In this document: piece after piece, positions 12,070 through 59,400 of the stretch
How positions within the stretch are numbered: position 1 is the first letter of the stretch
Layout of the letters: each line of letters begins with the position of its first letter
Origin: Anthoceros angustus
Taxonomy: Eukaryota > Plantae > Anthocerotophyta
DNA: 64,000 bases
Direction of reading: 5' to 3'
Assembly: GCA_010909165.1 (NCBI GenBank)
Contig: MU008167.1
Coordinates: 1,669,262-1,733,261, forward strand
Made by a program: the position numbers and the translations under genes
Notes under the pieces: model-generated
What the model was told of the DNA's origin: nothing
The model's input: only the letters and a program-made list of their open reading frames with translations
Databases searched by the model: none

Positions 12070-12950
12070 CAACCAGCAAGGCTCAGAGTCAAAGAAATAT
12101 TCCGCTATGCAGGCCGAGCTGCTGCTTTAGGAGGCTGGTTAACATACAAAATCACAATTGTTGATGGATCACAGACCACGAGATCTCTGGGCAATTATGG
12201 GCAGTTGCAAGCGGTTGACGTAGTTGGGGACAGTTGCAAAGCAGTCGTTGATGAACATGCCTTGTCCTTTCACAGCTTGTCAGGTGCATGATGTGCATGT
12301 CAACCAGGTTTCTTCAGCAGCACTTATGAGACAAAATGGGAATTTATGCCCCCCAAGATTCAGGGCCATAGGATGCCAACAGATATCAGCCAGCACCTAG
12401 AACCGGCACCAGAAGATGCAGCTTCTCAGCCTTTAGAAAATGCAGAAGATTGCTCGTGCACTCGTTCACTGATGCGATGTCTCGGCAACACACCCCTCAC
12501 AGTGAAGCACCCACGGCAAGCAGATCCAGTGTCACTATAAACACGTAAACACTGATGGGTGTTGACATGTTGATGTCTACACTGTATACATTCACATGAG
12601 ATGCAACAACCAGGGCAAATATTGGGGGTGCTCCAATTCACTGTGAAATGGAAAAGCAGCAACCAACCATCAAGGGACTGGGGCTACCTGTTGACTGCAA
12701 ACCGTGGACACTCAAGAGCCTGGATCACAACAACATCAGCATTGCGCCCTCGCGCCGTTTCGGCATGATCTGCAAGTCAGCAAGGTTTTTCTCTTCAGAA
12801 AAAGGCTGGAACGCAAAATTGATGCTGAGCGAAACCTCTGCGAGCATGTGAGCTCACCTAATTTGCATTCGCTCGATGTCATCAATACCGGGCACTCTGG
12901 CGGTTCAGAACAATGTTTGTGAACAACCATTCGTAGTGCACACTGTGTCC
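12070..12950 (-). pseudogene. Degenerate spliced gene fragment, possibly F-box/LRR-like (copy 1)
   Basis: Broken frames read TLDLLAVGASL.GVCCRD...LLHFLKAEKLHLL and LCNCPQLRQPLATAHNCPEI. Homologous to 14200-14830 (minus) and in part to 42540-42960. Confidence 0.3.
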
Positions 12951-14199
12951 ATTTCTCTTGGCAGCACAAACAAGTTCATACATAACATATCATTTTCATG
13001 CAATCTAATTTTTGCCGACCAAGGATTGGAGGTGAGGAGCATTCCCATTGAATGGGCTTGCAATGGTAAATTGCCTTTACTCTCTGACCCACCATGTCCA
13101 AACCTTGAGAAGCAACCCGTTTTCTGGAAAAGGTTTTTCTTGGATGTTGAAAGCTTGAGTTGGATGGTGAAAATATTTGTCTTCATACGAACGCATTTTC
13201 TTGGCTTGCCAATGAGTAATCCATCGGTATCACTCTTAAGTCGGAATTCCTGCATTTCTTGCAAGAGTCCACACACTCTTTATTTACTTAAGACTTGATT
13301 AGTGTTCCTTATCTCACACACTCCTTATTTAATTAAGACTTGATCAGTGCTCATTATCTTCCTTTGGTACTAATAGCAAGTTTGGAAACTTTCGGAGAGC
13401 GTTCTCTATTGAAACGTCCTCTATTGACCCTTATCCTTCCTTGCCTCATAAACTGCTTGCTTGTCTCTCTTCAAGCTTGTGCAAGCCGTAGGATGTTTTT
13501 CAACATGGATAAGTTCAGTGATTATATGTGTCTCCTTCACACCCCATTGTGATTACATAGAATAGCCTCATATAATTCATCTAATATTTTATTCTCAATA
13601 ATATATACTACTTGCAATTTGCAATGTACAATGCATATTGCCAATCCAATTACTTGGAGGCTGATGTTGATGAGGCCACCTGTACTCCATTTGCCATCTG
13701 CATGTAGTACTGGCGCATGTGCTGAACTTGCCTTTGCAACAATATGGCAAAGGGGAGGAAGAGCTACAGCCCTAAGAGAAGGAGTCCACACCTGGCAATG
13801 CTTGAGTCCAACATTCACAACTTTGGGTGCACATACACCAAATGATAGCAAAACTTCACAGTTAAGCGCCCCGTAAGGCAATTCAATATTGGGATGGGAA
13901 ACCATTCTTCCACAATCTTTCATTGATTGACATCTTTCATTCATTCACAGCCCGGTTGGGTAACTATTAGATGTCTTAGATTAAAGTCTTCCCCAGATTG
14001 GGTAACTAATAGATGTCTTAGATTAGAGTCGAAATCGCCCCAGTTCACCTGAGCGTGCTGGCCTCCCTCGTGTGTGGTCTCTGCGCGAGATTGGTCTCTG
14101 CGCGAGATTACCCCCACTGTATCTGTATCTGTAACCCCAGCCGATAAAGCAAGAGCCTGCTGGTAGGGAGCTCCTGCGTCCATTACTCCAGGTACTCCA

Positions 14200-15120
14200 T
14201 GGCCAGCAGCGAAATGTTGATAAAGTCGGAGCATAGTCGAGCCAACTGTACAGCTGCAAGAGGTAGAGCTTGCAGGTCCAACCAGCAAGGTTCAGATTCA
14301 GAGAACTATTCAGCCCTACAGGCCGGGCTGCTGCTTTATAAGGCTGTCTTGCCATACAAAATCACAATTGTGGATGGATCACGGACCACGAGATCTCTGG
14401 GCAGTTATGGGCAGCAGTGGCAAGCAGCTGTAGTTGAGGGTAGTTGCAAAGCAGTGCACGTGGTTGGTGTCGAACATGCCTCGTCCTTCCACAGCCTGTC
14501 AGGTGCATGATGTGCATGTCAATCAGGTTTCTTCAGCAGCGCTGAGGCCAACATATCCCAGAAACCACCAGGAAACGGCATCAGAAGATGCAGTTCCTTC
14601 AGCTTCTCAGACTCCAGAAGATGCAGAAGATTGTCGTGCATTCCTTCACTGATGCGCATGTCTCGGCAACACACCCAACACACTGAAGCACCCACGGCAA
14701 GCAGATCCAGTGTCACTTCAAACATGTCAACACCGATGGGTGTTTACATGTTGATGTTTACATTGTAAACATTCACATTGGATGCAACAACCAGGGTAAA
14801 TGTTGGGGTGGCTCCAATTCACCGTAAAATGGACAAGCAGCTTTCAAGATGCAGCCTTAAGACTTCTCAAGCAGACCTGTCAGCTGTCCATGATTTCCAC
14901 ATGAGACTGACTCATCAGCTCCGGATCCGAGAACTCTCAAGCTCCAAGATGCAGCAGTCAGCCGGCTTCTCTTCCATGACTTCACAACTACAGCTTTAAA
15001 ACACCAGCAGCCAGTCAGCTGGCCAGCGTATCCAAGTGCCACCATCTCAGTCTCTGTCTTCTCAAAGTCTGTAGCAAGCTTCTTTCGATCTGCAACAATC
15101 TGCGGGCTGTCTGCAATGTT
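14200..15120 (-). pseudogene. Degenerate spliced gene fragment, possibly F-box/LRR-like (copy 2), plus a 'KKLATDFEKT' exon
   Basis: ORF 14519-14725 reads TLDLLAVGASVCWVCCRD...LLESEKLKELHLL, followed by HLTGC and LCNYPQLQLLATAAHNCPEI (LRR-like). The 14830-15120 part recurs at 37430-37700 and 41870-42120 on the plus strand. Confidence 0.3.
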
Positions 15121-16600
15121 CTCTAGAGTGATAGATAGGAAGGAAGCGGGAAGCAAGTGGGGAGCACTCTTGTAGGATCCTTCAATATTGAAAGTGGTCA
15201 GGACATGTACACATAGACGACCTGTAAGGCCTAGAAGCAGCAGTACTCAAATTGTCATGTCATCTGGTCAGTCATGGGGTCAACAAGGGCGTCATGTCGT
15301 TTGGTCGGTCTATCTGGTCCGTTGGCTTGTGCAATGAGAATCTGAGCGAGTCTGTAGTACTATCTAAAACGGAAATGAGGGGAAAATATGTGTACTAAAT
15401 GTAGCCAGGAGTCGCGGCTAAATTGGGTCAGGGTTTCCGCAGGTCTGGAAACCCGTAAAGTTACTAACCTGGAATTAGGGCGGGATGTGAAGTACTTGTC
15501 CTCCCGCTCCTTTTCCTTGTCTGTTGACGCCACCAGAAAGCAGAAAGCAGGCGGCTTGCGCTTGGAACACCTGACCTGAGCGGGGCGTGAGATGGCGCGA
15601 TCAATGCAGCAGCAACAGGCGATGGCTGGAGGTGACGCCTCTGTTCTGTGAAGATACGCTTTTGGCAAAAGCAAGGCTCGCCTGGCTCCAATGCCTGCCT
15701 CTGTAAGGATACACCTTGTCTCTTAGGGTTCTCAAAACTCGAAGCTCGATATTGTGAGCCTGTCTCAAGGTGGATGGGATCGTCGCCCGCCCAGCCGAAA
15801 TCGTCAACAAGTTGTGCGGACTCATCAACAAGCTCAACAAGTGGACGAGTTCGGCTGGGCCACCGAGGGTCCCATCCACCTTAAGGCAGGCCCCCATAAT
15901 GGAGCTCCCATTTCTGAGAGCCCTGAAAGACAAAGTTGTATCCTCACAGAATCAACAATTGGAGCCAGGCGAGCATGTCGTCTTTGCCAGAAGCGCCATC
16001 GCCACGCGCAGAGGTCTGCAAATGGCCTGGGCAACCTTCGCCTTCGAGGCCCAGTTCATACGCAGATGGTCCAGAGAAGGAGAAGAGCCTGCCCTGTGAG
16101 GACGGCTGCTTCCGCTTCTGCTCCCAGACGAGGAGAGGAAATGTCGCCCGGAATGCTCCCGATCTGGCGCGGGATCCGGAGGCGCTTGTCAAGAGAATCG
16201 CGCGATGCAGGTGGAACACGAGAGGCGGCCTCAGGGCATGCTTGTCTGTGCGGGCTAGGAGAAAGCGCGCGCGGACGAGCTCGGGTCTGGATCCTACCTA
16301 CCCCTAGATGTACTTGGGAGTGAGCTACAGCCACGAGAGGATGAATAGGCTCTACAACGATATCCTCGCAAACTGGGTAAAGAATTAACCGGATCCGGAT
16401 GCTTGCGCAGGAGTGTACCGAGGACTTTCAATACTCTGATATCAAATGACAGCCAAGCATGGCGCAGGGAAGTGGCCCGGATGACAATTCACAGGCTGCT
16501 CAGGATCTGGAAGCGAGCGATCGTGAGCCTGGCCCGGTTGGACCGAGTCGAATTCACAGCTGGACCTGAATAACGACGTGAATCCTTCCAGCAGGAGATA
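15120..16600 (+). pseudogene. Unknown gene family X, copy A (frameshifted, with an internal inverted duplication)
   Basis: Carries the shared upstream module (TCTAGAGTGATAG...ATGAGAATCT). Coding remnants DEFGW, MELPFLRALKDK, FARSAIATRRGLQMAWATFAFEAQF and the downstream RLYN..NWVK / AAQDLE segments match ORF 38524-39582. Confidence 0.8.
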
Positions 16601-16846
16601 ATGAGTTGATTATATAGCAGCTCAGTATAAGTAGCAACAGCTACACGCATGCATTGCCAGCTGAAAAGAGATGTTGGCAGCTGGCTAGCCTGGAGCTTGT
16701 TATTCGCGTACTACACACATCATACCTTCATAGAAGCAGCAGCTAATATATGCCGGCAGCTCTTGATCAAGCTAGATCCGGACAGCCTACATCCACATAT
16801 GATTATATACGGCTGGCCGGATCCGGATGAGGGTGGATGCACCTAG

Positions 16847-17285
16847 CTAATCGCTGTGGTTTCGGAGAACGATGGCGAAGGGGCCGCTGTGGTCGTAACC
16901 AGAAACGCGGTTGACACCCGTGGTCTCGTCAAGGTACGTGCACTGGTGGATGATCTCCCATGTAAGACTCGCCGCATCCTTGCAAGGGTGCATTGTTTGT
17001 AGGGGCCGCAAATCCGCACCTGGGCGCCCGAGTCAGCCGCCATGGTGGTGCAGAATTTGCCGCTGCGCTCGTACTGGCAACACTGCCCTCCGTGGTTGTT
17101 GAGGCTGTTGGCCATGGCTTGCGCCTGCTTCCGAGTAGGATCTCGGCTGCCGTGGCTCTCGCAGGTGACGCTTCCTGCTTGCACTGCGGGCATGCTGCCA
17201 TCACCGCTGCCACTGCAATGCACGCCAGCATTGCCACTCCTACCGCTGGCCACCTCTTGATCATGGAACGCATGGAACTCGCCAT
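16847..17285 (-). CDS. Small secreted cysteine-rich protein (146 aa, 8 Cys in the mature part) after two single-base insertions
   Basis: ATG at 17285; hydrophobic leader ending in AVQA; mature GSVTCESHGSRDPTRKQAQAMANSLNNHGGQCCQYERSGKFCTTMAADSGAQVRICGPYKQCTPCKDAASLTWEIIHQCTYLDETTGVNRVSGYDHSGPFAIVLRNHSD*; TAG at 16847-16849. Needs +1 nt near 17193 and +1 nt in the GGG run near 16986-16988. TATTTAA upstream at ~17445-17452. Confidence 0.7.
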
Positions 17286-17543
17286 TAATATTCGGGTCTA
17301 GCAGCAGATCTAGAGCACAGCAGAGCAAAGCAGGCCTGCCTAGGGAGGCTAAGGGATCGATCGTCTGGAGCTGGCGAGATAGAGCGAGGGTGCAGATAGA
17401 AATGGATCGATGCTAGCTTGATCTGATCCACACCCTGCCCTTGGTTAGCTTAAATACCGGCAAGGATCCGGGGCAAGGTTACGGCTACGTTGGCCGGGTA
17501 GCTAGCGCATGCGAATTCCATGCTGCCCAATTGAGACTGAGAC

Positions 17544-20500
17544 TATAAAGCAAGACTGACTTGACTCACAGCAATTGCTAGAAAGAATTAGATCAGTATC
17601 AAGGTGTCAAAAGGTACATCTTATATGGTTCACGGCCTTCAGTGCATCTTAGTGTCTGTTCAGTGACGACCCCTAATATCTCGTGCTAGCTACTCTATGC
17701 TTTATATGTAGATCTCCTACACTCCCACTCATAGATTAGCTAGTATCTTCATCTTGATTGATAGAGGATCTTGGATTCTTCACAAGGCCAAGTCCTGCAA
17801 CACACTGATTATGCTTGTCTCTCGGTAAGCTCTTCGTCAGTACATCAGCCACCATCTTTCCCGTTCCACAGTATTTCAAACAAATCTCACCACTTTGGAT
17901 TTGCTCACGAATATAATGAAACTGAATGTCAATATGCTTGCTTTTAGCATGAAACTTCGGTTCTCTGATAGGCAATTGCACTCTGATTATCAGAGTAAAT
18001 CAGAGTAGGTTTGTCTTGTGGAAATCCAAGTGACTGAAGTAATCTTCTCTGGAACACAGCATTCGTAGCAGCCTTTGAAAGTGCCATGTACTCTGACTCG
18101 GTACTTGACAGTGCCACAGATCTTTGCCTTTGGCTTGACCAACATACTGCAGCACCTGCCAAAATGAAACAAGATCCCGAGGTAGAGCGTCGTGTGTCTA
18201 AATCACCGGCCCAATCAGCATCTGAGTAGCCAAATAGCGGCTCAAAGGTTTGAGCTTTCTGATATTTCAAACAAAGTGTTGTAGTGCCACTCAAATACCG
18301 CATAATCCGTTTACATCCAACCCAATGCGGTGAGCCTGGATTAGAGGAATATTGCGCAACACTGTTGGTAGAGCAGGTGATGTCAGCACGTGTTCCAGTA
18401 GATGCATAATTCAGGCTCCCAACTGCAGCTTTGTAAGGAATTGCGGCCATCTGAGTTTTGTCCTCCTCTGTGATAGGACAATCTTCCTTGCTCAGCCGAA
18501 TTCCAGCCTCCAAAGGTGTAGAAACTGCATGTGAATCTGCCATATTGAATCTCCTCAATATTTCTTTGACATATTTCTCTTGGGACAGACAAATCCATCC
18601 TTGAGCACGATTGCGGATGACCTCAATGCCTAAGCAATAGTGTAGATCCCCAAGTCCTTCATTTCAAACTCTGTCTTCAAGATTTTCTTGACCACTACTA
18701 ATTTTGTAATCGAGTTGCTTGCCAAAATGGCGTCATCAACATATAAAGCCAAAATGACAAATCCATCACTTCCCTTTAAGATGTATACATTAGAGTCCGC
18801 ATCGGACCTGATGAAACCAATTTTGAGCAGATATGCATCAAAGCGTTGGTACCATAAGCGGTGACTTTTAAGACCGTAGATGGCCTTCGCAACTTGCACA
18901 CATTTCCAAATTGATTAGGAGGCACCTTTATACCCTCGGTACTTCCATGTAGATTTCTTCTTCAAGAATACCATGGAGGAATGCGGTCTTAACGTCCGAT
19001 TGATGTAGTTCCAAATCAAATTGAGCAGCTAAAGCAATAATAATGCGAATGGATACCAACTTCTGAGGGGCAACGTTTCATCGTAATCAACACACGTTGT
19101 TGAGAATACCCCTTGCAACCACTCTTCCTTTGAAGCGTTCGATGCTCCCATCTGCTTTGTACTTCACTTTAAAGACCCACTTGCATCCAACCAAGCTGCG
19201 GTTAGCGGGCAAAGGAGTTAATGTCCATGTCTTATTTTCCAAAAGGGATCGAAGCTCGTCATCCATGGCTGCTTGCCATTCAGCTGCAAATTCTCCAGAC
19301 AAGGCCTCCTCCACACTTTGTGGCTCAATAATAGGTACTTGTGTCAGCAGAGCCTTGCGCTTCGACTTGGGTGTCTTCCTCCCTTCCAATGTCTCAACCA
19401 ATCTTTGGCGGACGTCTACTTCTCTGACCACGTCAAGGAGAGGTGAGTCGGACTCCACCACAGCTGGACGTCTGCGCAAGCCTTCTGGGGAGCTAAGATC
19501 CAAGGGTGTTACACTTGCTCCCCCTCCCCAGTTACTGCTCTCCCATCTTCGTCATCTCCCCAGTGAACTCCCACGCAGGAACGCTCCCACTTGAAGAGGG
19601 GCTCCCACTGCAAGGCGGTGGCGAGGAGGAGGACAAGAGGAGGAACTACAACCCAGGGAGGAGAAGGCACAGGATGTGCCGGATTGGGAGGAAAACCGCC
19701 GCCAAAGAGATGCTTCATCGGGAGCGGATTCTTGAGGAGCATCGTCCTCGAGGCGAGAGGCTCTACCCTCGGCGCCATGAAAGACCACATCACGGAGACC
19801 ACCACCGTGCGCGAGACTTGATCATAACCCGATAAGCCTTGCTCTCCTCACTATAGCCCGTAAAATGGCGCCGGACTTGCGCCAAGTTCGTTACGTTTTC
19901 ATCCGGGACATGGACAAAAGCATTACACCCAAACACTGTGATGAGAAATGTCGCTTATGTCCTGTCCACACTTCATAGAAGTACTGCCTTGGATGATCGC
20001 GTGGGCAACGATTCTTCACATAACATGTTACAAGGGCTTCACCCCAAAAGGTTTTGGGAAGACGAATCGGCAAGCATACTCCTCACGGATTCATCGAGCG
20101 ATTCTCTCGCCGCCACGGGTTCTTGAGGAGTGTAGGGAAATATCGGCGTAATGCCATGGGTGACACAAAATTCATTGAATTCATCACTCAAGTACTCGCC
20201 ACCATTGTCGCTTCTTAGCGTTTTGATTTTGTGACCAGATAATTCTCGGCCATTGCCGGTAGCGCTTAAACTTGTCAAAGGCCTCGGACTTCACCAAGAA
20301 GGTACACCACCGTGTACTTGGAGAAGTCATCCTTAAACGTAATGAAGTAACGCCTTCCGTATGAGTCGGAGTTTGCATGGGACCACAAATGTCGAGTGCA
20401 CGATTCCGGCCGAGGTCGGCGTACCTCCTTGTTTGGGAAACTTCCACGATGTTGCTTGCCTTCTAAGCAAGTGAGCATGACGATGGAGAGCTGTGTCCAC

Positions 20501-22654
20501 GAATCAAGGCCAATGACCAGCTTTTCCTTACCATTTGTTGAAGTCTTGCATCACCGAGGTGTCCAAGACGCCGATGCCAAAGTTCGTTTCTGCCTGTAGC
20601 GTGCAGAACATGGGATTTGGTAAGGTTCGAGCGCCAGCTTGTAGAGGTCATGGACCATGGAGCAGTTGCTACCACGACCATGTTTATTAAGAAGGACTCA
20701 CTCCTCCTTTAATCCGCAGCTCTCCACCTGCAGAATTGTTTCCAGAGAATGTGTTCTTCTTTAAACCTGGTCACATGTAACACATCTGGGACTTGTCTTG
20801 TACTTCCATCTAGGAGAGTAATTGCCACAGTGCCTTTTCCACAAATTGCTTGTGTGGTATTATCACCTAGATAAACCACCTGACCCACTCGCCAGCTTAC
20901 ATATTGTGTGAAACCTCCATGACTATGAGCCATGTGTTGTGTCGCACCCGTATCTACATACCAAGTCGTCTCCAGACTGTGATATGTGACTAGGGCAGCC
21001 ACGCATTAGCTTCTCTCCATAACATTTGCATGAGCATCGCTCCAAGACCTCGGCTATGCGTTTCCGACAATCCTTGATCATATGTCCGGGCTTCTTGCAA
21101 TAAAAACATTTCACCTTCTTCTTAGAATTTTGGGTTCTCACCGACCCAAGTGAGGGCTTCAACGAGCCTCCTTGGCCACCTTTCTTAGGATATGGTCCGA
21201 GCGTTTACTTGTCGATGTAATGCGATGATGCTTCCGAGGCCGAACCAAGGTTCTTTAACATTTTCTCCTCCCTGAATTAAATAGCGATGAGAGGCTGTAA
21301 GTGTCAGTCGACCTCTTAAGGAGATTAGAAAACCCCTATAACTAGGAGGCATACTCCTCATTAAGGCTACGCATCCTCATCATCTACCGTAGTTCGAGCC
21401 GACATCTGTTCCAACAAGTCCTTAAAATTGTGAATGTGTTTAATCATGCTATCACCCTCCTTCATTTTAAGTGTAGCCAAACTATCCCTTAGATACATTT
21501 TGGTGATGGAATCCTTTGCCTCAAAGAATCTAATCAACTCATCCCAAACTGCCTTTGAGGACTTGGAGGTTTGAACGTAGGGAACCACATTATTTTCAAG
21601 ACAATTATTCAGGACTGAAATTGCAGAATTTTCTCTTTCCTCCCAATGAGAAATACTTCCAACCCCACTTATAGGAAGTGGTGCATGAGTTCTGCAATCA
21701 CGTGGCGGAGCAACCAGTATTAACTCTGTACCATCTACAACACTCCACAATTTTTCTTTCAACAATAGTTGCATTCGATGTTTCCAAACATGGAAATAAG
21801 TTCCATCAAACTTGGGAATATGCCTAATATCTACTGGCCTCAAGGCTGCCATGGCCACTATTACTAATCTATTTAGTACAAATGACCCTCTCTACAACAA
21901 TATGTGCATGAAGGAAATTAGCGAATAATTTTGGGTAAGGCAATCTTTAATTGTGGTGGTTTCAAATTTTCTCATTAGCATTTCTAACTTCATTTCTATC
22001 TTTGATAGGCAATTTTTGGTTTGTAGGAAGCTATCTTGTACAACTTTGCCACTTTGCAATAACTTGCAACAAAGATAGACTAAATTAGATGAGATGTCTT
22101 CTAAGTTAGAATCGCATTTGAAGTTGTGACCGTTGGATTTTGTGTCCTCCGATTGCCTTCTACCACTCTTCCTCCCATTAGCCATTTCTTTAAATTGAAT
22201 CAAGAAAGATTCAATACTATCTTCATAAAATAAAGAAATGGCTAATTCTGCTTTTGGCTCACAATTTGAGCCAATAAGCGGAGTTGTAGAGATCTAGGCA
22301 TTTGTTTAAAGCCGAAAGGAATCCCGATTGAAAGGTTTGTTTTCATCGGAACTCTCTCATCGGCTTTAGTTTTATACCCAGGCATTTTCCCTAACAAAAG
22401 GTTGTGAAGTGCATCTGCACACACAAGGATGTGATCTCTAAGCTTCTTAGGATCACATTCCCATGGCTCTGATACCATATAAAGCAAGACTGACTTGACT
22501 CACAGCAATTGCTAGAAAGAATTAGATCAGTATCAAGGTGTCAAAAGGTACATCTTATATGGTTCACGGCCTTGATGCATCTTAGTGTCTGTTCAGTGAC
22601 GACCCCTAATATCTCGTGCTAGCTACTCTATGCTTTATATGTAGATCTCCTACA
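17544..22654 (-). mobile_element. Full-length Ty1/copia LTR retrotransposon with TG...TA termini
   Basis: LTRs 17544-17721 and 22478-22654 are nearly identical; TSD GAGAC on both sides; PBS TGGTATCAGAGC (iMet) at 22466-22477; PPT GAGTGGGAG next to 17721. Frameshifted gag (PKFDGTYFHVWK, CFYCKKPGHMIKDC), protease (WYVDTGATQHM), integrase (WHRRLGH, LRSDNGGEYLS), RT (WVFKVK, LALYVDD) and RNase H (YSDADWAG, KHIDI). Confidence 0.97.
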
Positions 22655-23203: not shown

Positions 23204-24689
23204 TTCAACTTTGAAATCGTATCCCGTATCACTTCTCGCCTAACCTTTGAAAGATATTCATAATACAAATCCGCATCACCCAACTATTTGGATCCTTCAA
23301 TGATTTTGTTTCCTTCATAATGTATTTGTGACCCACGACACTGACCCCCAATGCTGCAAATATCCATCATTGTTGTCCATTAACTAGTTTAGATACTTGT
23401 GGAAATAAATAAAAGTAAAATCTTGCTTAGTAGGCCTCGTTACATTGTAGCACACAAATTAGCCGTACTTTGATCATTTACCAGCACACTTGAAGATAAC
23501 CTTGAGTTATTCATGGAGTGAGCGTGCAAAGCAAAAGTTTGGGTCCCTTGTCATTTTGATCCAGTTTGGTTCATTTTGGTTCAATCTTGATTTGAAGTTA
23601 TCAATGAGTAGTAACGAGTGTTTCTTCTTGAGCCATCAGGAAAGTTACGGACAAGGGTAGGAATTTGGAAGTTTTTCAATTCTATATAGATTAGCGGGTA
23701 GGGTAGAATCTTGTCCCATAGTCTATATGTGCAAAGGGGAATTAGTGATTAATTTAGAACCCATAGTTTGCAAAGCGCATAGTTGGAAGGAGCTAGGAGC
23801 TGCAAGGAGTGTGTGCTGGGAAGTAGTATGGGCTAATTGAAATGCAAGTTGGAAGAGGGCGCGGCATTGTCATGGGTGTGCAGAAGCAAGAGCTCAAATT
23901 TTGGAGCTAAGATGTGGAGAAGCCAAGACAGAGTGCTGTCACGGAAGCTGGGATTTTGGGAAAAATTTATGCCTTGTGAGCTAAGCGCTGTGACGCCATG
24001 AACTAGAGCTTGTGATTTGAACTTAGGAGGTGCTGACCTTGCAATGTGAGAAGTGGAGTGCTGGTTGTGGGCTACGATCCGCTGTGGGCCTCTTCTTGCT
24101 TTGGGACATCAGCTGCCGCCGGGCTCTTGGGGTTGATGCTGCCTGGCTGGGTCACCTTCCTCCTCCACGTGCATCCTGGATGCCTGCAACCATACCACAG
24201 CATAACACCATCCGACACCCCATGGACAGAGCCTGTGGCATTTGTGATGGCTGCGAGGATAGCACACAGTCCACATCACGTAGGCTTGGATTGCCGTCAC
24301 CATCCAGCACTCCTAAAGGAAAACGAACAACCACATCCTCGGCCTCTGCCATGCCGCACACAGATCGTAAGTGGCACACGGGAGGCTGGACATCCCCGAG
24401 TCATGAGCATGGACTTCCAAAGGAAATCAGCAACCAGGAACTTCGCATCCGGGGCTAAGACTTGCAATGCTGCGAAATTGAGCCTACCTGCACATGCAAT
24501 TGTCGTGACTCTCCTCATGTTCCAAAAATCCTCCATGACGTCCATTGAATGCTTCGCAGCCCAACGAGCCTCTTCCTTCGAAGGCATCCTCCCCCATCCC
24601 GCTCCAAATTCATGAGGATGGCCTTGTCACCGCGGCGCCTGAAGGGATTAGTTCCTGCTGTGCCGCCTTGCTTCCACTGCCTTTTTCTC

Positions 24690-27600
24690 CCCATTCCACC
24701 ATATTCCCCCAAGCAAGTTCCTACACTCCACCGACCATACCCCATTCCCCCAAGCAAGGTCCTCCACTCCACCACACCCCATTTCCCCGAGCAAGTTCCT
24801 ACACTCCATCGACCACACCCCATTCCCCCAAGCAAGTTCCTACACTCCACCACACCCCATTCCCCCGAGCAAGTTCCTACACTCCACCGACCACACCCCA
24901 TTCCCCAAGCAAGTTCCTACACTCCACCACACCCCATTCCCGAGCAAGTTCCTACACTCCATCGACCACCCCATTCCCCAAGCAAGTTCCTACACTCTAC
25001 CACCCCATTCCCGAGCAAGTTCCTACACTCCACCGAGCCACCCCATTCCCCAGCCAAGTTTCTACACTCCACCACACCCCATTCCCCAAGCAAGTTCCTA
25101 CACTCTAGCACCGACCACACCCCATTCCCCCAAGCAAGTTCCTACACTCCACCACACCCCATTCCCCCAAGCAAAATTCCTACACTCCACACACCCCATT
25201 CCCCAAGCAAGTTCCTACACTCCACCGACCACACCCAATTCCCCCAAGCAAAATTCTACACTCCCCCCAAGCAATTCCCCCAAGCAAGTTCCTACACTCT
25301 AGCACCGACCACCCCATTCCCCAAGCAAGTTCCTACACTCGACCACCCCATTCCCCATTCCCCAAGCAAGTTCCTACACTCCACCACCCAATTCCCCAAG
25401 CAAGTTCCTACACTCCATCGACCACACCCCATTCCCCAAGCAAAATTCTACACTCCCCAAGCAATTCCCCAAGCAGTTCCTACACTCTAGCACCCACCCC
25501 ATTCCCCAAGCAAGTTCCTACACTCTAGCACCGACCACCCCATTCCCCATTCCCCAAGCAAGTTCCTACACTCCACCATTCCCCATTCCCCAAGCAAGTT
25601 CCTACACTCTAGCATCGACACCCCATTCCCCAAGCAAGTTCCTACACTCCACACCCCATTCCCCATTCCCCATTCCCCAAGCAAGTTCCTACACTCCACC
25701 ACCCCATTCCCCATTCCCCATTCCCCAAGCAAGTTCCTACTCCACCACACCCCATTGCCCCGAGCAAGTTCCTACCTCCACCAAGTTCCTACACTCCACC
25801 ACACCCCATTCCCCATTCCCCAAGCAAGTTCCTACACTCCACCACCCCATTCCCCAAGCAAGTTTCTACACTCCCCAAGCAATTCCCCAAGCTAGTTCCT
25901 ACACTCTAGCACCGACCACACCCCATTCCCCAAGCAAGTTCCTACACTCCACCACACCCCATTCCCCATTCCCCAAGCAAGTTCCTACACTCCACCACCC
26001 CATTCCCCATTCCCCATTCCCCCAAGCAAGTTCCTACTCCACCACACCCCATTGCCCCGAGCAAGTTCCTACCTCCACCAAGTTCTACACTCCACCACAC
26101 CCATTCCCCATTCCCCAAGCAAGTTCCTACACTCCACCACCCCATTCCCCAAGCAAGTTTCTACACTCCCCAAGCAATTCCCCAAGCTAGTTCTACACTC
26201 TAGCACCGACCACACCCCATTCCCCAAGCAAGTTCCTACACTCCACCACACCCCATTCCCCATTCCCCCAAGCAAGTTCCTACACTCCACACACCCCATT
26301 CCCCAAGCAAGTTTCTACACTCCCCAAGCAATTCCCCAAGCTAGTTCCTACACTCTAGCCACCCCATTCCCCCAAGCAAGTTCCTACACTCCACCACCCC
26401 ATTCCCCATTCCCCAAGCAAGTTCCTACACTCCACCACACCCCATTCCCCCATTCCCCAAGCAAGTTCCTACACTCCACCACCCCATTCCCCATTCCCCA
26501 AGCAAGTTCCTACACTCCACCACCCCATTCCCCATTCCCCAAGCAAGTTCCTACACTCCACCACACCCCATTCCCCAAGCAAGTTTCTACTCCCCAAGCA
26601 ATTCCCCAAGCTAGTTCCTACACTCTAGCACACACCCCATTCCCCAAGCAAGTTCCTACACTCCACCACCCCATTCCCCATTCCCCAAGCAAGTTCCTAC
26701 ACTCCACCACACCCCATTCCCCATTCCCCAAGTTCCTACACTCCACCACACCCCATTCCCCATTCCCCAAGCAAGTTCCTACACTCCCATTCCCCCATTC
26801 CCCAAGCAAGTTCCTACACTCCACCACACCCCATTCCCCAGAGCAAGTTCCTACACTCCACCAAGTTCCTACACTCCACCACACCCCATTCCCCCATTCC
26901 CCCAAGCAAGTTCCTACACTCCACCACCCCATTCCCCGAGCAAGTTCCTACACTCCACCAAGTTCCTACACTCCACCACACCCCATTCCCCCGTTCCTAC
27001 ACTCCACCACACCCCATTCTCCCATTCCCCAAGCAAGTTCCTACTCCACCACCCCATTCCCCATTCCCCAAGTTCCTACACTCCACCACCCCATTCCCCA
27101 TTCCCCAAGCAAAATTCTACACTCCACCACCCCATTCCCCGAGCAAGTTCCTACACTCCACCAAGTTCCTACACTCCACCACACCCCATTCCCCATTCCC
27201 CAAGCAAGTTCCTACACTCCACCTACCCCATTCCCCGAGCAAGTTCCTCCACCAAGTTCCTCCACCACCCCATTCCCCCCGTTCCTACACTCCACCAAGT
27301 TCCTACACTCCACCACACCCCATTCTCCCATTCCCCCAAGCAAGTTCCTACACTCCACCACACCCCATTCCCCCGAGCAAGTTCCTACACTTTACCAAGT
27401 TCCTACACTCCACCACACCCCATTCCCCCGAGCAAGTTCCCACACTCCACCAAGTTCCTACACTCCACCACACCCCATTCCCCCATTCCCCAAGCAAGTT
27501 CCTACACTCCACCACACCCCATTCCCCCGAGCAAGTTCCTACACTCCACCAAGTTCCTGCACTCCACCACACCCCATTCCCCCATTCCCCCAAGCAAGTT

Positions 27601-27897
27601 CCTACACTCCCATTCCCCCGAGCAAGAAGCAAGTTCCTACACTCTAGCTCTACCAAGTTCCTGCACTCCACCACACCCCATTCCCCCATTCCCCCAAGCA
27701 AGTTCCTACACTCCCATTCCCCCGAGCAAGAAGCAAATTCCTACACTCTAGCTCTGACCAGGTTTCTACACTCTACACTCCACCGACCACACCCCATTCC
27801 CCCAAGCAAGTTCCTACACTTTAGATCCGACCACATCCCATTCCCCCAAGCAAGTTCCTACATTCCCCCAAGCAAGTTCTTACACTTTAGCTCCGAC
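24690..27897. repeat. ~3.2-kb C-rich/G-rich minisatellite, ~40-bp core unit
   Basis: Dozens of variants of CCCCAAGCAAGTTCCTACACTCCACCGACCACACCCCATT, with internal (CCCCATT)n stutters and duplicated higher-order blocks. Confidence 0.98.
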
Positions 27898-27961
27898 CGC
27901 CTTCCTCCACTCCGAGTAGACTATGTTCCCAGGGCGCAGGTGCATCTCGTAATCGCCCTTG

Positions 27962-30900
27962 TGTTAGGAAAAGAGCTGAGCCTTTATAGAGAGGGAACAC
28001 AACACTCCCATACAATATGGGTTATATGCACTAGGCACACTAAATACTAGCACACAAGAACACTTGCACACCACACCAGGTGGGCTTGGCCTTATAGTCC
28101 TAGCCTTGAATCGGTCCTTGACCTTGACCTTGAACTTGACCTTGTTACTTGACCTTGAGTCCTATTGGTCACTTGACCTTGAATCCTACTGGTCACTTGA
28201 CTTGCCCTTTACTTTTGGACTTTCTAGAAGATACTTTCTAGAAGATGCATGACTTTCAAGTTTGTTATTTTAGGGCACTCTTCATAACCTGCTTTTAGGG
28301 CACTCTTCATAACATATTTTGATATGTTGTAATAAATCACTTCTAACACTCCCACTCAACATATCAAAATTATTCCCTTAGGCCTAGCATCTTGCTAAAC
28401 CTAGCATGTTTTCTAAAGTCAAGGCTTTGGTCAAAATATCTGCGGCATGTCTCTGTTGGACAATACTCTAGCTTTACCTCTTTTGACTTTACCTTCTCTC
28501 TTATAAAGTGATGTTTCACTTGATGTGCTTGGTTCTAGCATGAAAAGTTGCATTCTTGGCTAAGAAGATGCAACCTTGATTGTCGTTGAAGATTGTTGTT
28601 GCTTCCTTGCTTGAATCCCATCTCCTCTAGCAAGTTACGCAACCATATCGCCTCCATGACAGAGCATGTTGCCATATATTCTTACAGAGGATAGAGCCAC
28701 GATGGGTTGTCTCCTACTATTCCAAGAAATGGCTCCCCATTCGGCATAAGCATATCCGATCGTAGACTTGCGACTATCAACATCTCACCGATCGAATCAC
28801 AATATCCTACCACTCGGACTTCCTGCGATGCTCTGTTGATACACCAAATTCCAATGCTTTGTACCACTCAAGTACCTCATTATCCTCTTCACGGCTTGAA
28901 AGCTGCTTGTCGAGGTTAGCCATAAATTGACTTGCAACTCCTCTGCAATGTCGGCCTTGTCCTGTAGATAAATAGGTGAGGCATCCAACGGCACCTGCGA
29001 TAGAGAGTTTTATCTACCTTCTCCTTCTCTTCTTGTTGTAGGACTCATCTCCTTTGAGAGCTTCTCATTAAGCACCATTGGTGTCTTCAGCTTGCACTCT
29101 TGCATTCCAAAGCGCTTGGGACATTCTCAACATATGTCCTTTGGCTCAAAGAGATCTTCTTGTTAGCCATCTCTCATTACTTCTATCCTAGAAAGTAATG
29201 AAGTTCACCTAGATCCCTCATATCAAAACTATCATTAAGACTCTTCTTACTCTAAGAGCTCCAAATCATTGCAAACAAGGATTAGATCATCCACATAGAC
29301 AGAATGATCATCATGGACTCTCCCACTCTCTTCACATAGATGTTCCAATCTCCATTGGTTTTCTTGAAACCTCTAGCTTGGAAGAACTTGTCAATCTTAA
29401 CATACCGTAAGTGCAGTTGCTTAAGACCATAGAGTGCCTTTAGCAATTTACATACCTCACTTTCATCAGCACTTCATACCCTTGGTTGGTTCATGTAGAT
29501 CTCTTCTTCCAAATCTCCATTGAGAAAGCAGTTTGGACATCCATGTGATGTATCTCCGGATCCATGGTAGCTATTGCTAAGAGTATACGAATGGATGTTA
29601 TCTTAGCAACAGGGAGAAAGTGTCGGTGTAGTCAATACAGCACTTGTGTATATCCCTTCCCACCAGCCTTGCTTTGTATCGCTCTATGCTCCCATCAGCG
29701 TTGTGCTTGATCTTGAACACCCATTTGGATCCTATGCACTTCCTTCCTTGGGGTAGAGGAGTGATTTCCCAAGTCTTGTTCTTGATAAGTGAGTTATACT
29801 CACTATCAGCTTCTTTCCACTCCTTCGCCTTTGGCCCTTCCAAGGCTTCCTTCAAGCTTTGCGGCTCATCGATCCGCCAACATAGCCTCTTCTGCATGCA
29901 TTCATGGACTCCAAAATTTTCTGCGAAGGTTTCCATCGCCTTGATGATCTCGATCGGGTCGGCTCCTCTTGGATTCTTTGATCTCGCTCCTCTTCATCAT
30001 CCTCGATATCCGGGCTTCTCCACCTTCTATATCACCTTGTGGTAGAGGTTGCTCATGCTCGAGAACAGTTGAGCATGCTCAAGAGTAGGTTGCTCAAGAA
30101 CCAAGTCTTGTGCTTCTTCACGCTCCTTCAACTCCTTGATGACAACTTGCGTTGCTCCCACTCCTTTGTTAGGTTCCACAACCTCATGAAAAACAACATC
30201 CTCGAAAATGATTTTCTTGGTTGTAGGGTTGTATAATCTATACCCTTTACCTCATGAATACCCAAGCATGATGCATGGATGCCTTTAGGATCCCACTTGG
30301 TTCGGTTTTGCTTTGGAACATGAGCATAAACCTCGAACCAAAGATCCTAAAATGACTCACGTTAGGTTTGACACGGACCATGCCTCCTCGGGGTCATTCC
30401 AGTCTGATGGTTGGAACTCTATTCAAAACATGAGTTCTTTGTAATGACCTCTCCCAAAACGTACCTCCAACCCACTTTGATGGAGCATGCACTTGGCCGC
30501 CTCCACTAGGCTCCTTAGCTTGCGCTCCGCCACTCCATTTTGCTCCGGTGTGTGAGGAATTGTTAGTTGCCTCCGAATGCCATGCTCCTTGCAAAAGCTT
30601 TTGAATTGAGAAGAGATGTATTCTCCTCCATTGTCACTCCTAAATATCTTGAGGCATTCTCCACTTTCGTTCTCCACCAAGGCTTTCCACTCCTTGAATG
30701 TCTTGAACATTTCGGACTTCTCCTTCAAAAGGTATGTCCAACTCCTCCTTGTGAAGTCATCCACAAACACTAGAATGTAGCGGGCTCCTCCATGGTGTGG
30801 GCTTCATTGGTCCACAATCTCACTTGATTTTCTTAGGCAGCACACAATGTGCAAGCTTGTTGATCACCTAAGCACACAACTTGTAGAGATTGCCTTCCGA

Positions 30901-38523: not shown

Positions 38524-39582
38524 TCATGGGTCCAACGGAATTAACTCACTGCGAGAAGCAGCTCGGCACGCAGGCTGAGGACGAGGCTTTGGATGCTCTA
38601 CGCTAGGCCTGCTTGCCAAGGGCCTCATATCCTCAAACCCGGGGCCTGTCCAGGACTGTGGCAGGGGCAAGCAAGCTGATTCCTGGCCACCGGAGATATC
38701 CATGTGCGTTTCGTCTTTCAAGTCCAGCTGTGGACTCGGTCCAACCGGGCCAAGCTCACGATGGCTCGATTCCAGATCCTGAGCAGCCTGTGAATTCTCA
38801 CCCGGGCTACTTTCCTGCGCCATGCCCTCTGGACCCTCCTGCGCAATCATCCGGAAATGCTTTACCCAGTTTCGGAGCTCGTTGTACAGCCTATTCTTCT
38901 TCTCGTGGCTGCAGCTCACTCCATTGTACAACTCGGAGTCACATCCAGACCCGGGCTCGGCGGCGCGCGCTTCCTCCTGGCCCACACAGACAAGCATGCC
39001 CTGAGGCCGGGTCTCATGTTCCACCTCCGGTGCCTCCATCCCGCGGTTCTCCTCGCATGTTGCCTCCTGCGCCAAATCGGGAGCAGTCCGGGCGGCCTCT
39101 CCTCCTCCTTGCCTGGGAGCAGAAGCAGAAGCAGCCATGCTCACAGGGTCGGATCTTGTCCTGTCCTGGGCATATCCGCCTCTGAACTGGGATTCGAAGG
39201 CGAAGGTTGCCCAATCCACTTGCAGACCTCTGCGCGTGGCGATGGCCCCTCTCGCAAAGCAGAGGCTCACGTGGCTCCAAATTTTGCCTTTGTGAGGATA
39301 CACCTTGTTCCTTAGGGTTTTCAGAAATGGGAGCTCTATGGTGCGAGCACGTCTGAGGTTGATGGGACCACGATGGCCGGCCCAGCCGAACTCGTCCATC
39401 AAGTCCTGCTTGGTCACAATCTGGTCCAAGGCACCGGTGTGTCTTGGGTCAAGGCCTTGATCACTCAGGCCCATGCTGGAGAAGTGAGCCTTGTCGAACA
39501 CGGGCGTCCTCCTCCTTCTGGCGGCACGTCTAGCCATCGCCTGCTGCTGTGCTTGCTGCTGCCGTCGCCTTGGTCGCACCAT
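38524..39582 (-). CDS. Unknown gene family X, copy B (most intact, 352-aa ORF); further exon-like repeat at 37966-38472
   Basis: Uninterrupted ORF with a basic N-terminus (RRRQQQ...RRAARRRR), a conserved ~110-aa core GLSDQGLD..DLMDEFGW..INLRRARTIELPFLKTLRNKVYP..W..V..CFARGAIATRRGLQVDWATFAFE, then an acidic low-complexity tail. The upstream module at 39600-40260 is shared with other copies. Confidence 0.75.
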   Translation of the reverse strand: MVRPRRRQQQAQQQAMARRAARRRRTPVFDKAHFSSMGLSDQGLDPRHTGALDQIVTKQDLMDEFGWAGHRGPINLRRARTIELPFLKTLRNKVYPHKGKIWSHVSLCFARGAIATRRGLQVDWATFAFESQFRGGYAQDRTRSDPVSMAASASAPRQGGGEAARTAPDLAQEATCEENRGMEAPEVEHETRPQGMLVCVGQEEARAAEPGSGCDSELYNGVSCSHEKKNRLYNELRNWVKHFRMIAQEGPEGMAQESSPGENSQAAQDLESSHRELGPVGPSPQLDLKDETHMDISGGQESACLPLPQSWTGPGFEDMRPLASRPSVEHPKPRPQPACRAASRSELIPLDP

Positions 39583-44639: not shown

Positions 44640-46050
44640 CGAGACCCCAAGCTGGACATATCCTTGAAAGCTCCAACAGTCTGGGGTCTCCTCCAGACCT
44701 GCGTTTAACACCACAATCTCGTTTCCGTTCACGACGTCGTCATGCCGCGCATTGCTTGCACTTGAGGGGCAACGTACATGAAAACTCTGAAATTTGAGAA
44801 TCCATGGTAAGGAATCAACTCACCGGGAGAAGCAGCGTTGCTCCCAGGTACAGGACGACACTCTGGAGGCTGTACATGTACAGCTTGTGTCCCCTCCTGG
44901 CTCAGTTCCTGACGAGGCTCCGGAGGCTGTACATATACGGTAGGCCTGCTTGCCAGGGCCTGATATCCCCAGGGACATGGTCAAGCAAGCGTATTTCTGG
45001 CCACAAGAGACATCCACCTGTATTTCTTCATACAATTGCAAGTTTACCTGCGAACTCGGTCCAGCTGGCGGGCTCTTCTCGCTAGCCACTGGAGCCAGGC
45101 AGTGAATTCACATCTGGGCCGAGCTTGTTGGAGAGGCCATTCATGGTGTCGTTGCCGAATCCCATGTACATTTGGGAGTGAGATCCAGACCCCGGCTGGT
45201 CCGCGCGCGCTTCCTCCTGGCCCGCATAGAGGAGCATGCCCTGAGGCTGGATCTCATGTTCCTGCACCTCCTCTACACGATTGTCATGAGAAGTAGCCCT
45301 CGGCAGCACATGGGGAGCATTCCGGAAGGCATCTCCTCTGAACGCCTGGGAGTGAAATCCAGAGCGCGCGCTCTCGTCCGCGGGCTCTTCCTCCTGGACC
45401 GTACAGACAAATATGGCCCGAGGCCGGATCTCGCGTCCACGGGGCTCCCCGAGCTCCATCCCGCGGTTGTCATGACAAGTAACCTCCCGCGCCACATGAG
45501 CATTCCGGGCGACCTCTCCCTCTCCTTGCCTGGAAGCAGAAGCATCCGTCCTCACAAGGTAGTCACTTTTCTTATGTAGGCTATTCCTTTGCCAATGAGC
45601 TGGGCCTCGAAGGCGAACTTTGCCCAGCCACTTGCACACCTCTGCAAGGCCAAGGCGCCTCTCGCAAAGGACACTCTCCCCGCTCCAACTGTTGCCTCTG
45701 TTGGGATACACCTTGTCTTTCAGGGTTTTGAGAAACGGGAGCTGTATTGTGCGAGCCTTTCTGAGGTTGATGGCACCCTTGCCGGTCCAGCCGAACTCGT
45801 CCATCAAGTCCTGCCTACTCACCATTCCATCCCCATCCCAGGCATGCGGGATTCTTGGATCAAGGCCTTGGTCCATTGCTCGCGCCATGTCAAGCTGCTC
45901 TCAGGTCAGGTCTGCCAACCCCAAGCCTCCTGCTTTCAGTTGGCGTCAGAAGGAAGGAAGGGAAGCGGCAGGTTGAACGACTCAAGTTCACTATCCCGAT
46001 TCCCGCCCAATTCCAGGTTACCGGGCGGCTTTTCCCGACCTATATACATG
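44640..46050 (-). pseudogene. Unknown gene family X, copy C (frameshifted)
   Basis: QGLDPR..DLMDEFGWTGKGAINLRKARTIQLPFLKTLKDKVYP; a shifted frame gives VSFARGALA..WAKFAFEAQL. The downstream region is homologous to 37970-38900. Confidence 0.8.
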
Positions 46051-56499: not shown

Positions 56500-59400
56500 C
56501 CTCGACAGGCGCGTGCGATGGGTGAGAGCACGCTAGATGCTGCCCAGCTCGCACGGCTCTTGAACGAAGCACACCAACAGATGAAGCAGATGGAGCATCA
56601 GTTTGCGGAGAGTAACGCGAGGGTGGCTCAACTGGAGGCAGAGGTCAGCCAACGCCCCGCACAAATGGCCAGTAGAGGCTCCAAGGTGTCTAAGCCAGGG
56701 CACCTCGAGGGGACGGGAGATGCAACGGAGGTTGAGCTATGGATACATCAGGTGCGAGCTTACTTGGAGCTCAACGGCACGGATCCTCAGCAGTATGTGA
56801 AGGTGGCAGCCACGTTTCTCGAAGGGGCCGCCCTACTATGGTGGATTCAATTACTGGATGCGGTAACGCGAGGGGAAGCAACTGGGCCAGCCAGCCTGCT
56901 CGAATTCTTACAAATGGTACGTGCCAAGTTCATTTCACAGCCGAGGGACGGCAGTCGCCAGGGAGCATCACTAAATGAACCACGGTGCGCTATACCACCG
57001 AAGCGAGTTCAGGTGATGAGTATCCCTCGGATGACGGACAAAGAAAAGTTGGATCGGTACTCCCGAGGGTTAAAACATGCTGTGAGGAGGGATGTGGTGA
57101 TGCACACCAGGTGCAAGATATTTGAGGAGGCTGTCATGACTGCACAGCAGTCTGATGCACTATACCAGGAGTTTAGAGGCTGGTACAAACCGGCTAGGGC
57201 GTTCGGAGCCGGCCAGGGAGAAGCCACTCCGATGGAGCTTGGTCAGATTCAAGCGTTCCAAGGACAATGCTATGTCTGTCAACAGTGGGGGCATCGTGCC
57301 CGCGACTGCCTACAGACCTCCGCCCGGGGAACTGGACGCGGACGAGGGAGGCGGATTCATGGCAACGGAGGAGCTAATCGTGAAGTGAATTTTGCACAAG
57401 CAGATGTTGTCCAGCCTCGAAGGGGACCCCAGAGTGAGGGTTGCATGTCAGGCACTTGGTCGCAAAAACGGGCAAGCCCAACCGCAATCGCTCATGCAGG
57501 CCATATCAACGGGAGACCTTGTCGGATCTTGATTGATTGCGGAGCAAGTACTAACTTCTTGTCTCGCCGTTATGCAAGGAGGGCGTGCTCGGATATCGGC
57601 ATGTATAATGTGCATAGCTAATGGCCAACTTCTGAGGAGAGCTACGCGGACCGCCCTTCAGACTTAAGGATGGGAGCATATTGCGAACGGGTGAGCTTCA
57701 CCATAACAGAACTAGGGAATGGACACGATGCCTTTTTGGGCATGCCTTGGCTTGAAGATCGCAATCCAGCCATCACTTGGCCTCAGCGTGAGCTGTCTAT
57801 TGTGCTGCACGGGAGACAGTACACTATACGAAGGGAGCAGCTTCGTAGTAGCGACAAGACTAGTTTTCATGATGTCTCGGTTGTGGACATGCGGAAGGAC
57901 ATAAGGAGGAAGGGAGGACGCGGGATGACCTTGTTTGTCATCAAGGAGAGGCTCTGCCCTATGCGACCTGATAAGCTTGTTGTCCCTGAAGGTGATGCTG
58001 GGATTACTAAAATCATGACTAATTTTCAGGATGTCCTTGTCGACACCGTTGCCACCATCCAGGGATGTTGACCATCGAATTGAACTTGTGCTAGGATTCC
58101 ATAAACCCCCCATCGACCTGTATACAGGATGTCCCCATTAGAGATCCAGGAATCAACTCTGCAAGTGGAGGAACTGCTACGCAAGGGCTACATAAGGCCC
58201 TCCAAGTCACCATATGGAGCACCTATCTTGTTTTCACGAAAGAAGAATGGTAAATTACGCATGTGTATTGACTATTGAGGATTGAACAACCTCACTAAGA
58301 AGAATACATTTCCTCTTCCCCGTATTGATGAACTACTGGAGGGCTTGGCAGGAGCCCGCTACTTCTCGAAGTTGGATCTGGCTAGTGGCTATCACCAGAT
58401 CAGGATTGCTGCAGGAGATGAAGAGAAGACAGCATTTAATACCAGGTATGGCCACTATGAGTGGCTTGGTATGTCGTTTGGCATGACAAACGCCCCCGCA
58501 TTGTTCCAAACGCTTATGAACGATGTCTTTCGTGGTTTGATCAACAAAGGCATCTTGGTTTACCTTGATGACATACTCGTTTATGGTAGGAGGGCAGAAC
58601 ACAACAAGAACCTACGAGAGGCCCTGTCTCGGCTTAGGAAGCATCAGTTGTATGTTCAAGCCCCGAAGTGCGAGATATTGCATCGAAAGGTCGAGTACCT
58701 TGGGCACATTATTGACGAGACCGGCATTCGGGTCGACCCAGCCAAGGTACAGGTGGTCCAGGAATGGCCCACTCCATCGCAAACTGGTGAGTGCAGAGTT
58801 TTCTTGGCCTTGCATCATACTATAGGAAGTTTATCATGGGTTTCGCTAAGAACGCTGCGCCTCTGACAGTCCTATTAAAACAGGGGGTTGCGTGGCAGTG
58901 GGGTCCCAAACAGGAGGCAGCCTTTCAAGCCATCAAGCGGGCCCTGACCATCGCTCCCGTTCTTGCCTACCCCGATCCGTCCGTGCCATTCATCGTTACC
59001 ACAGATGCATCCGATACTGCTGTGGGGGCCATTTTGCAACAGGACCACGTTTCGGGCAAGCAGCCTGTGGCCTATTTCTCGCGGAAGCTTAATGGCGCCG
59101 AGTTAAATTGGACGACAAGCGAAAAGGAGACGTTGGCCCAGGTACTTGCATTGAAGAATTGGTGTTGTTTCCTTGAGGGAGTAGCTTTTGACCTCGAGAC
59201 CGACCATTGCCCTCTTGTCTACTTACAAACACAGCACCATCTTTCTCGAAAGCAGGCTAGGTGGCTAGAATTTTTGCAACAATATCAGTATACTATCCGT
59301 TACGTGAAGGGGCGGCAGAATCAGGCTGCTGATGCCCTCAATAGATTGCAGACCAATGCCCTTGTCACTAAGCTCCAAGTGCAGCCACCGTGGTAGGCGG

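Follow-up and report, generated by a model that had tools for sequence, protein, structure and literature searches.

The window analysed here, a stretch of 64,000 nucleotides from the hornwort Anthoceros angustus, holds at 16847–17285 on its minus strand a leader, a middle piece with six cysteines and a C-terminal piece with two cysteines, each read in a different frame. The leader piece (17196–17285, frame A) begins with an ATG at 17285–17283 and, as read from sequence, resembles a signal peptide, its n-region with K/R being followed by about 20 hydrophobic residues. The middle piece (16987–17193, frame B, 69 aa) would represent the first two thirds of a KP4-fold domain, and the C-terminal piece (16847–16984, frame C, 45 aa), terminated by a TAG at 16849–16847, its last helix and two strands. 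The change from frame B to frame C is precisely located at 16985–16986, where the complete codons of the middle piece and those of the C-terminal piece are separated by just two bases, an incomplete codon beside a CCC run. The preceding change, from frame A to frame B, was deduced from the expected leader and not from an alignment, and is not exactly placeable within its interval (17167–17196) because both frames are open there; homology, as judged by a profile search of six-frame fragments, supports frame B from 17166 onward. With one X inserted at the second break the cysteines follow the spacing C-x26-CC-x8-C-x13-C-x5-C-x2-C-x13-C. Short introns were considered in place of the frame breaks and rejected, as the intervals leave far too little room for them and the relatives described below are colinear. 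A putative TATA-like element (tatttaag, 17456–17449 on the minus strand) lies roughly 165 nt upstream of the start codon.

Base composition changes along with the reading frame. Third-position GC is 0.76–0.86 in the frame of the middle piece over 17180–17000 and shifts to the frame of the C-terminal piece (0.69–0.76) over 16970–16850, with the other frames at 0.4–0.6. Taken per piece, the values are 0.77 for the middle and 0.73 for the C-terminal piece, compared with 0.79 for a PsbO open reading frame (ORF) in the same window. In contrast, the flanks of the relic have a GC content of 0.48–0.54, and a transposon gag stands at 0.38.

When the middle piece was run by HMMER against 1.84 billion protein cluster representatives, precisely two proteins came up, so that the homology is based on two distant sequences with modest E-values. 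The first, P0001 (128 aa, E 9.1e-5, 41% identity), comes from a JGI metagenome contig and has the same eight cysteines, and the second, P0002 (122 aa, E 6.2e-4, 36% identity; XP_033393751), belongs to Aplosporella prunicola (Dothideomycetes, Ascomycota), where its intronless gene lies on a 575-kb scaffold. UniRef names P0002 an “Ecp2 effector protein domain-containing protein”, and both proteins open with a hydrophobic leader of 18–19 aa. By BLASTP the middle piece scores 45.8 bits. The C-terminal piece, which was absent from the HMMER query, aligns to residues 81–114 of P0002 with a pairwise E of 0.003, and when the pieces are translated straight through, with X standing at each break, both relatives align to the translation at 56 bits each and need no gap across the second break, 8/8 cysteines of P0001 being matched, including C-x5-C-x2-C-x13-C. 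Conversely, a profile of P0001 and P0002 alone ranked the middle frame first among 1994 six-frame fragments of the window (E 6.5e-14, positions 27–88), with the adjoining C-terminal fragment in second place (positions 83–125) and in colinear order. Since the pieces are colinear with the relatives, the cysteine spacing is exact and the six-frame profile ranks both domain pieces at the top, the three pieces are the remains of one former intronless gene, with the second break amounting to one incomplete codon.

Much of what the earlier note had read from the DNA alone is borne out by these comparisons. It had described one split intronless ORF for a secreted protein with eight cysteines, and the pieces are indeed colinear with the relatives, third-position GC following their frames; its cysteine spacing was reproduced, and the TATA-like sequence is present. 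Both of its frame shifts also exist, although the first can be confined only to an interval. The note had further seen a resemblance to secreted proteins of filamentous fungi, in agreement with the finding that the only detectable relatives are fungal or fungal-like, and had recognised no plant class of cysteine-rich peptides, in line with the lack of any Pfam match.

The gene family escapes Pfam and word searches. Neither the three pieces nor a 161-aa frame matched any Pfam model at E up to 10, the shadow ORFs likewise had no Pfam match, and the Pfam Hce2 and Kp4 models did not match P0001 or P0002 at E up to 1. When proteins of two length ranges were searched by words, the middle piece gave no match, and a word-based search with a four-row profile recovered nothing beyond P0001 and P0002. 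A metagenome locus scan revealed no relative, comparison of the pieces and of the four-row profile with PDB sequences returned noise alone, with no match to 1KPT, Rfam gave no match on the whole window, and tblastn and blastn of the pieces found no second copy within the window.

The state of the gene was assessed on a 1142-nt contig from a public DNA run (X1), which spans 16430–17573 at a depth of 11.6, equal to that of neighbouring unique contigs; this run may share its sample with the assembly, so that it is perhaps not fully independent. The X1 contig has the sequence of the window at both frame breaks. Over 1.1 kb the two sequences disagree at three positions, where X1 has a substitution at 17029 that is synonymous in the domain frame and further one-base deletions at 16957 and 17238 that split the C-terminal piece (in its helix) and the leader, respectively. 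When the X1 variant is translated, the homologous blocks fall into five segments, versus three in the window. All three differences lie inside the relic gene, with none in 700 nt of unique flanks, and they may be strain differences or errors in one of the two sequences. A second run of the same sample (X2), guessed to be RNA, yielded no contig on the gene, which is weak evidence as its RNA nature is a guess, and an exact look-up of four window ORFs among 15 billion proteins retrieved no record of a product of the locus.

The locus is thus a decaying pseudogene and not a hidden working gene, and its decay appears neutral because two breaks are common to both sequences and two more are private to X1, a pattern unlike that of random sequencing errors masking an intact gene. 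The earlier note had proposed a hidden working gene, a claim overturned by the X1 contig, which confirms both breaks and adds two frame-breaking deletions, and by the missing product record. It had also set a test, by which reads confirming both frameshifts with no expression would mean a pseudogene; with both breaks in X1 and no contig in the putative RNA run, the outcome falls on the pseudogene side. The contrary explanation, that of an intact, working gene in which both frame changes stem from indel errors of the assembly, could draw on the homopolymer CCC adjoining the second break, on a codon-position bias that is still strong, and on the two single-base indels by which window and X1 differ in 1.1 kb, from which it follows that indel errors or polymorphisms do occur. 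It is nevertheless very unlikely, as the X1 contig, obtained from other data, is the same at both breaks and, where different, more broken, and no transcript was detected in the putative RNA run.

The X1 version also contains an alternative frame that stays open for about 160 codons. This run was rejected as a real gene, being of low complexity, rich in A/S/T/P, devoid of GC3 bias or a homologue, and skipping the homologous domain. Together with several long shadow frames that are open and with the absence of Pfam or word-search matches, such a run might suggest that no gene ever existed at this locus and that its cysteine-rich frames are chance products of GC-rich DNA. The probability of this verges on the negligible: the E-values of 9e-5 and 6e-4 are library-wide, the alignment continues colinearly into a different frame with exact cysteine spacing, and GC3 periodicity changes frame at the same place.

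Another contig of run X1, 700 nt long and at a depth of 11.2, agrees with the window at 90% over 16986–17025 (minus strand) and diverges thereafter, marking a diverged paralogue elsewhere in the genome. Between the conserved blocks flanking the second break it has one base more than the window, so that a single frame runs through, and past the site of the break 4/9 of the next residues equal those of the C-terminal reading of the window. The genome therefore holds at least one more, diverged copy of the gene. As the paralogue reads through the site of the second break, that break is private to the window copy.

The relic is host DNA, and contamination is excluded by its physical links to host repeats, by equal sequencing depth and by the presence of PsbO on the same window. 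The PsbO ORF (manganese-stabilising protein; 645–1370, plus strand, 241 aa) matches nearly the full length of its model at E 9.5e-95, and since PsbO is a nuclear photosynthesis gene, the window must be plant or algal nuclear DNA. On the other side of the relic, a copia-type LTR retrotransposon (17544–22654, minus strand) lies 259 bp upstream of its ATG. The 178-bp LTRs of this element are 98.9% identical and have non-canonical ends (TA...CA), and its 5-bp target duplication (GAGAC) is perfect; its gag ORF (21367–21858) matches Retrotran_gag_2 at 3e-20, and as no intact pol ORF of at least 150 aa was seen in it, it may be truncated or non-autonomous. The X1 contig of the locus runs into the flanking repeats on both sides and extends 30 nt into the copia LTR, showing that the insertion is present there too. 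Fungal contaminant DNA misjoined into a plant contig would fit a gene that is intronless and whose relatives are fungal, but its likelihood is negligible given that the X1 contig ties the gene to host repeats on both sides at a depth equal to that of unique contigs, and that a copia insertion with target duplication and the PsbO ORF lie on the same window.

The TE-rich setting that had been noted for this region is confirmed. Ty3/gypsy-type retrotransposon genes occupy 56518–59396 (plus strand) and are split over frames, comprising a gag zinc knuckle and aspartyl protease (56518–57621), reverse transcriptase (58282–58866) and RNase H (58791–59396). Several further repeats were observed. A dense, irregular tandem array of C-rich units of 33–44 nt (core CCCCATTCCCCAAGCAAGTTCCTACACTCCAC) fills 24700–26000, with a GC skew of -0.5 to -0.7 at the array and a skewed zone extending over 24000–28000; two long ORFs over this array (24549–25490 and 26052–27647) match no Pfam model, and both are probably artefacts of the repeat. 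A segmental direct duplication (12064–12660 and 14273–14841, 2.2 kb apart, 71–95% identical in blocks) is flanked by 72-nt tandem units (11218–11432) with inverted partners near 13874–14063, and is perhaps foldback- or MITE-like. An imperfect inverted duplication at 15657–15995 (about 75% complementary, with arms at 15713–15817 and 15832–15936) belongs to a repeat family that recurs at 38849–39398 and 45485–45803.

Placement of the family relied upon a predicted structure of the relative P0001, modelled from a four-row alignment, rather than of the window's own pieces. Across the mature domain of P0001, in which a strand, a helix, four strands, a second helix and two strands follow one another, the AlphaFold2 model reaches a pLDDT of 80–93. 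The Foldseek comparison, a check that the earlier note had called for, was run on this model and gave 8ACX (Zt-KP4, a Zymoseptoria tritici effector with an Hce2 domain) as its top match, with eight 8ACX chains within the top nine rows at probabilities of 0.95–1.00; 4NDS stood at rank 6, and next came two mushroom lectins, KP4 (1KPT) and ginkbilobin-2. VIA-align of the same model graded these similarities, from Z 11.1 against Zt-KP4 (8ACX; 96 residues, 2.6 A) and Z 9.9 against the KP4 toxin (1KPT; 92 residues, 2.6 A), through Z 7.2–7.5 for the two mushroom lectins (82–94 residues, 2.9–3.1 A) and Z 6.0–6.2 for DUF26 ectodomains (84–89 residues, 3.4 A), to Z 5.1 for ginkbilobin-2 (89 residues, 3.8 A), all other rows scoring Z 3.4 or less. 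In the ESM Atlas, a search by shape with the P0001 model placed first an Ascomycota cluster with Hce2 members (TM 0.80 as given in that row), while a search by features related P0001 to an Ascomycota “secreted protein family” cluster (0.93) and to an Hce2 cluster (0.92). The window's own middle piece led to the same Ascomycota secreted-protein and Hce2 clusters as weak top leads (0.79 and 0.78).

These results bear upon a superfamily whose structural classification has been described. Ecp2/Hce2 proteins constitute structural group 2 of the KP4-fold superfamily, many of its members having no Pfam domain, moss KP4 genes fall in the Pfam-Kp4 group, and KP4-fold proteins are also held by plants (PMC12382754). 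The P0001 model displays the alpha/beta sandwich that defines the KP4 structural superfamily over the whole mature domain, and the protein of the window would have the superfamily's other hallmarks, being small and secreted, with an even number of cysteines (a leader read from sequence, and eight cysteines). At the level of Pfam it belongs to none of Hce2 (PF14856), Kp4 (PF09044) and PF01657. Judging from the P0001 model, the window gene would be an unassigned branch of the KP4-fold superfamily, nearest to its Ecp2-like side. Membership of Pfam Kp4, as in mosses, was considered and rejected, the Kp4 model not being matched.

As to where the gene came from, its relatives at sequence level are all fungal, as is each of the nearest Atlas clusters, with Ascomycota making up most of them, and a fungus is its likeliest source. 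The lack of introns, the transposon-rich location and the KP4 precedent in mosses also speak for such an origin, while the host-like codon composition and the native KP4-fold domains of plants, low as their scores are, speak against certainty. This origin is plausible and, on balance, favoured, though unproven, and it is suggested by the distribution of the relatives and not by a tree; a distribution limited to fungi may itself be a sampling effect, with hornwort proteins perhaps poorly represented in the libraries. The proposal in the earlier note of a fungus-derived gene is thus upheld in so far as P0002 and the Atlas clusters are fungal, and weakened in that the relatives are two and distant (36–41% identity). 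Hornworts do offer precedent for fungal transfers in other gene families (PMC7027989). A literature search retrieved no paper that connects Hce2 with Anthoceros, or Ecp2 with bryophytes.

The principal competing account would make the locus the relic of a fast-evolving KP4-fold family that was passed on vertically among plants or streptophytes and is related to the DUF26/ginkbilobin type or to other plant sandwich proteins; the fungal matches would then be a matter of sampling. Occurrence of the KP4 fold in plants (with DUF26 at Z 6.0–6.2 and ginkbilobin-2 at Z 5.1 against the P0001 model), a host-like GC3, at least two diverged copies in the genome and the possible under-representation of hornwort proteins in the libraries are all compatible with it. 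We consider it distinctly improbable, however, as sequence relatives and nearest Atlas clusters are all fungal and mostly of Ascomycota, Zt-KP4 and KP4 outscore the plant folds by a wide margin, no match to the Pfam stress-antifungal (DUF26) model was obtained, and the C-x8-C-x2-C motif of that family is absent.

Taken as a whole, the locus is probably best explained as a unitary pseudogene of a fungus-derived, intronless gene for a KP4-fold secreted protein. The ancestral product would have been small and secreted, with about 108 residues in its mature form, four disulfides and the alpha/beta sandwich of the KP4 and Ecp2/Hce2 proteins; its leader was presumably cleaved close to an A-x-A-like site that immediately precedes the first cysteine, as in P0002. 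The gene most likely entered the plant lineage from a filamentous fungus, after which it would have taken on a host-like codon composition and been duplicated at least once. The window copy would then have lost its function through the two shared breaks, the further deletions present in one sequence and the copia insertion in its promoter region, and would now yield no domain-bearing protein. While still intact, the plant copy was most likely an apoplastic protein with antifungal or calcium-perturbing activity, by analogy with its structural neighbours. Intact proteins of this fold that are related to it are secreted. KP4 is known to inhibit fungi by disturbing calcium uptake. Fungal growth is inhibited by UmV-KP4 and Zt-KP4-1, and the action of KP4, Zt-KP4-1 and moss KP4 upon fungi or calcium fluxes is extracellular (PMC12382754).

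A bolder scenario, which we regard as speculative and rather unlikely, would have hornworts acquire an Ecp2-like KP4-fold gene from an ascomycete, independently of moss KP4, and keep a small family in which at least one paralogue, intact and expressed, is secreted and works against fungi or modulates symbiosis, the window copy being a decayed member.

The fungal killer-protein genes of the KP4 type found in mosses are a standard example of gene transfer from fungi to plants. A hornwort relic from another, Ecp2-like branch of that fold would mean that secreted antifungal-type genes entered bryophyte lineages more than once and can also be lost again. The practical value is small because the copy itself is dead; the worth of the finding lies in its pointing to the paralogue or paralogues elsewhere in the genome and in revealing a family that Pfam and word searches miss.

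Set against known systems, the relic most resembles the Ecp2/Hce2 effectors (PF14856) and Zt-KP4-1 (8ACX), which are likewise small, secreted, cysteine-rich proteins of fungal type. Although 8ACX is the best structural match of the P0001 model, the two share only 10–14% identity, and whereas the Hce2 pattern consists of three conserved cysteines and a W/F/Y motif (PMC12382754), the relic has eight cysteines that align to those of P0001. Unlike the Ecp2/Hce2 effectors, moreover, the copy in the window is broken and resides in a plant genome. With the KP4 toxin of Ustilago maydis virus P4 (1KPT) it has in common the alpha/beta sandwich, secretion and richness in disulfides, but the cysteine pattern of Kp4 (PF09044, with four conserved cysteines, three glycines and two aromatic motifs) differs from its own. 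The plant stress-antifungal domain of DUF26 and ginkbilobin-2 (PF01657) shares the general sandwich fold and a secreted antifungal role in plants, yet its structural scores are much weaker and its C-x8-C-x2-C is absent from the relic, which has C-x5-C-x2-C in its stead. A parallel in a bryophyte is found in the moss Physcomitrium patens, whose KP4 genes, according to the account of Guan et al. 2023 given in PMC12382754 and PMC12513842, were horizontally acquired and so provide a precedent; those genes are intact and functional, whereas the hornwort relic is a pseudogene of a different branch.
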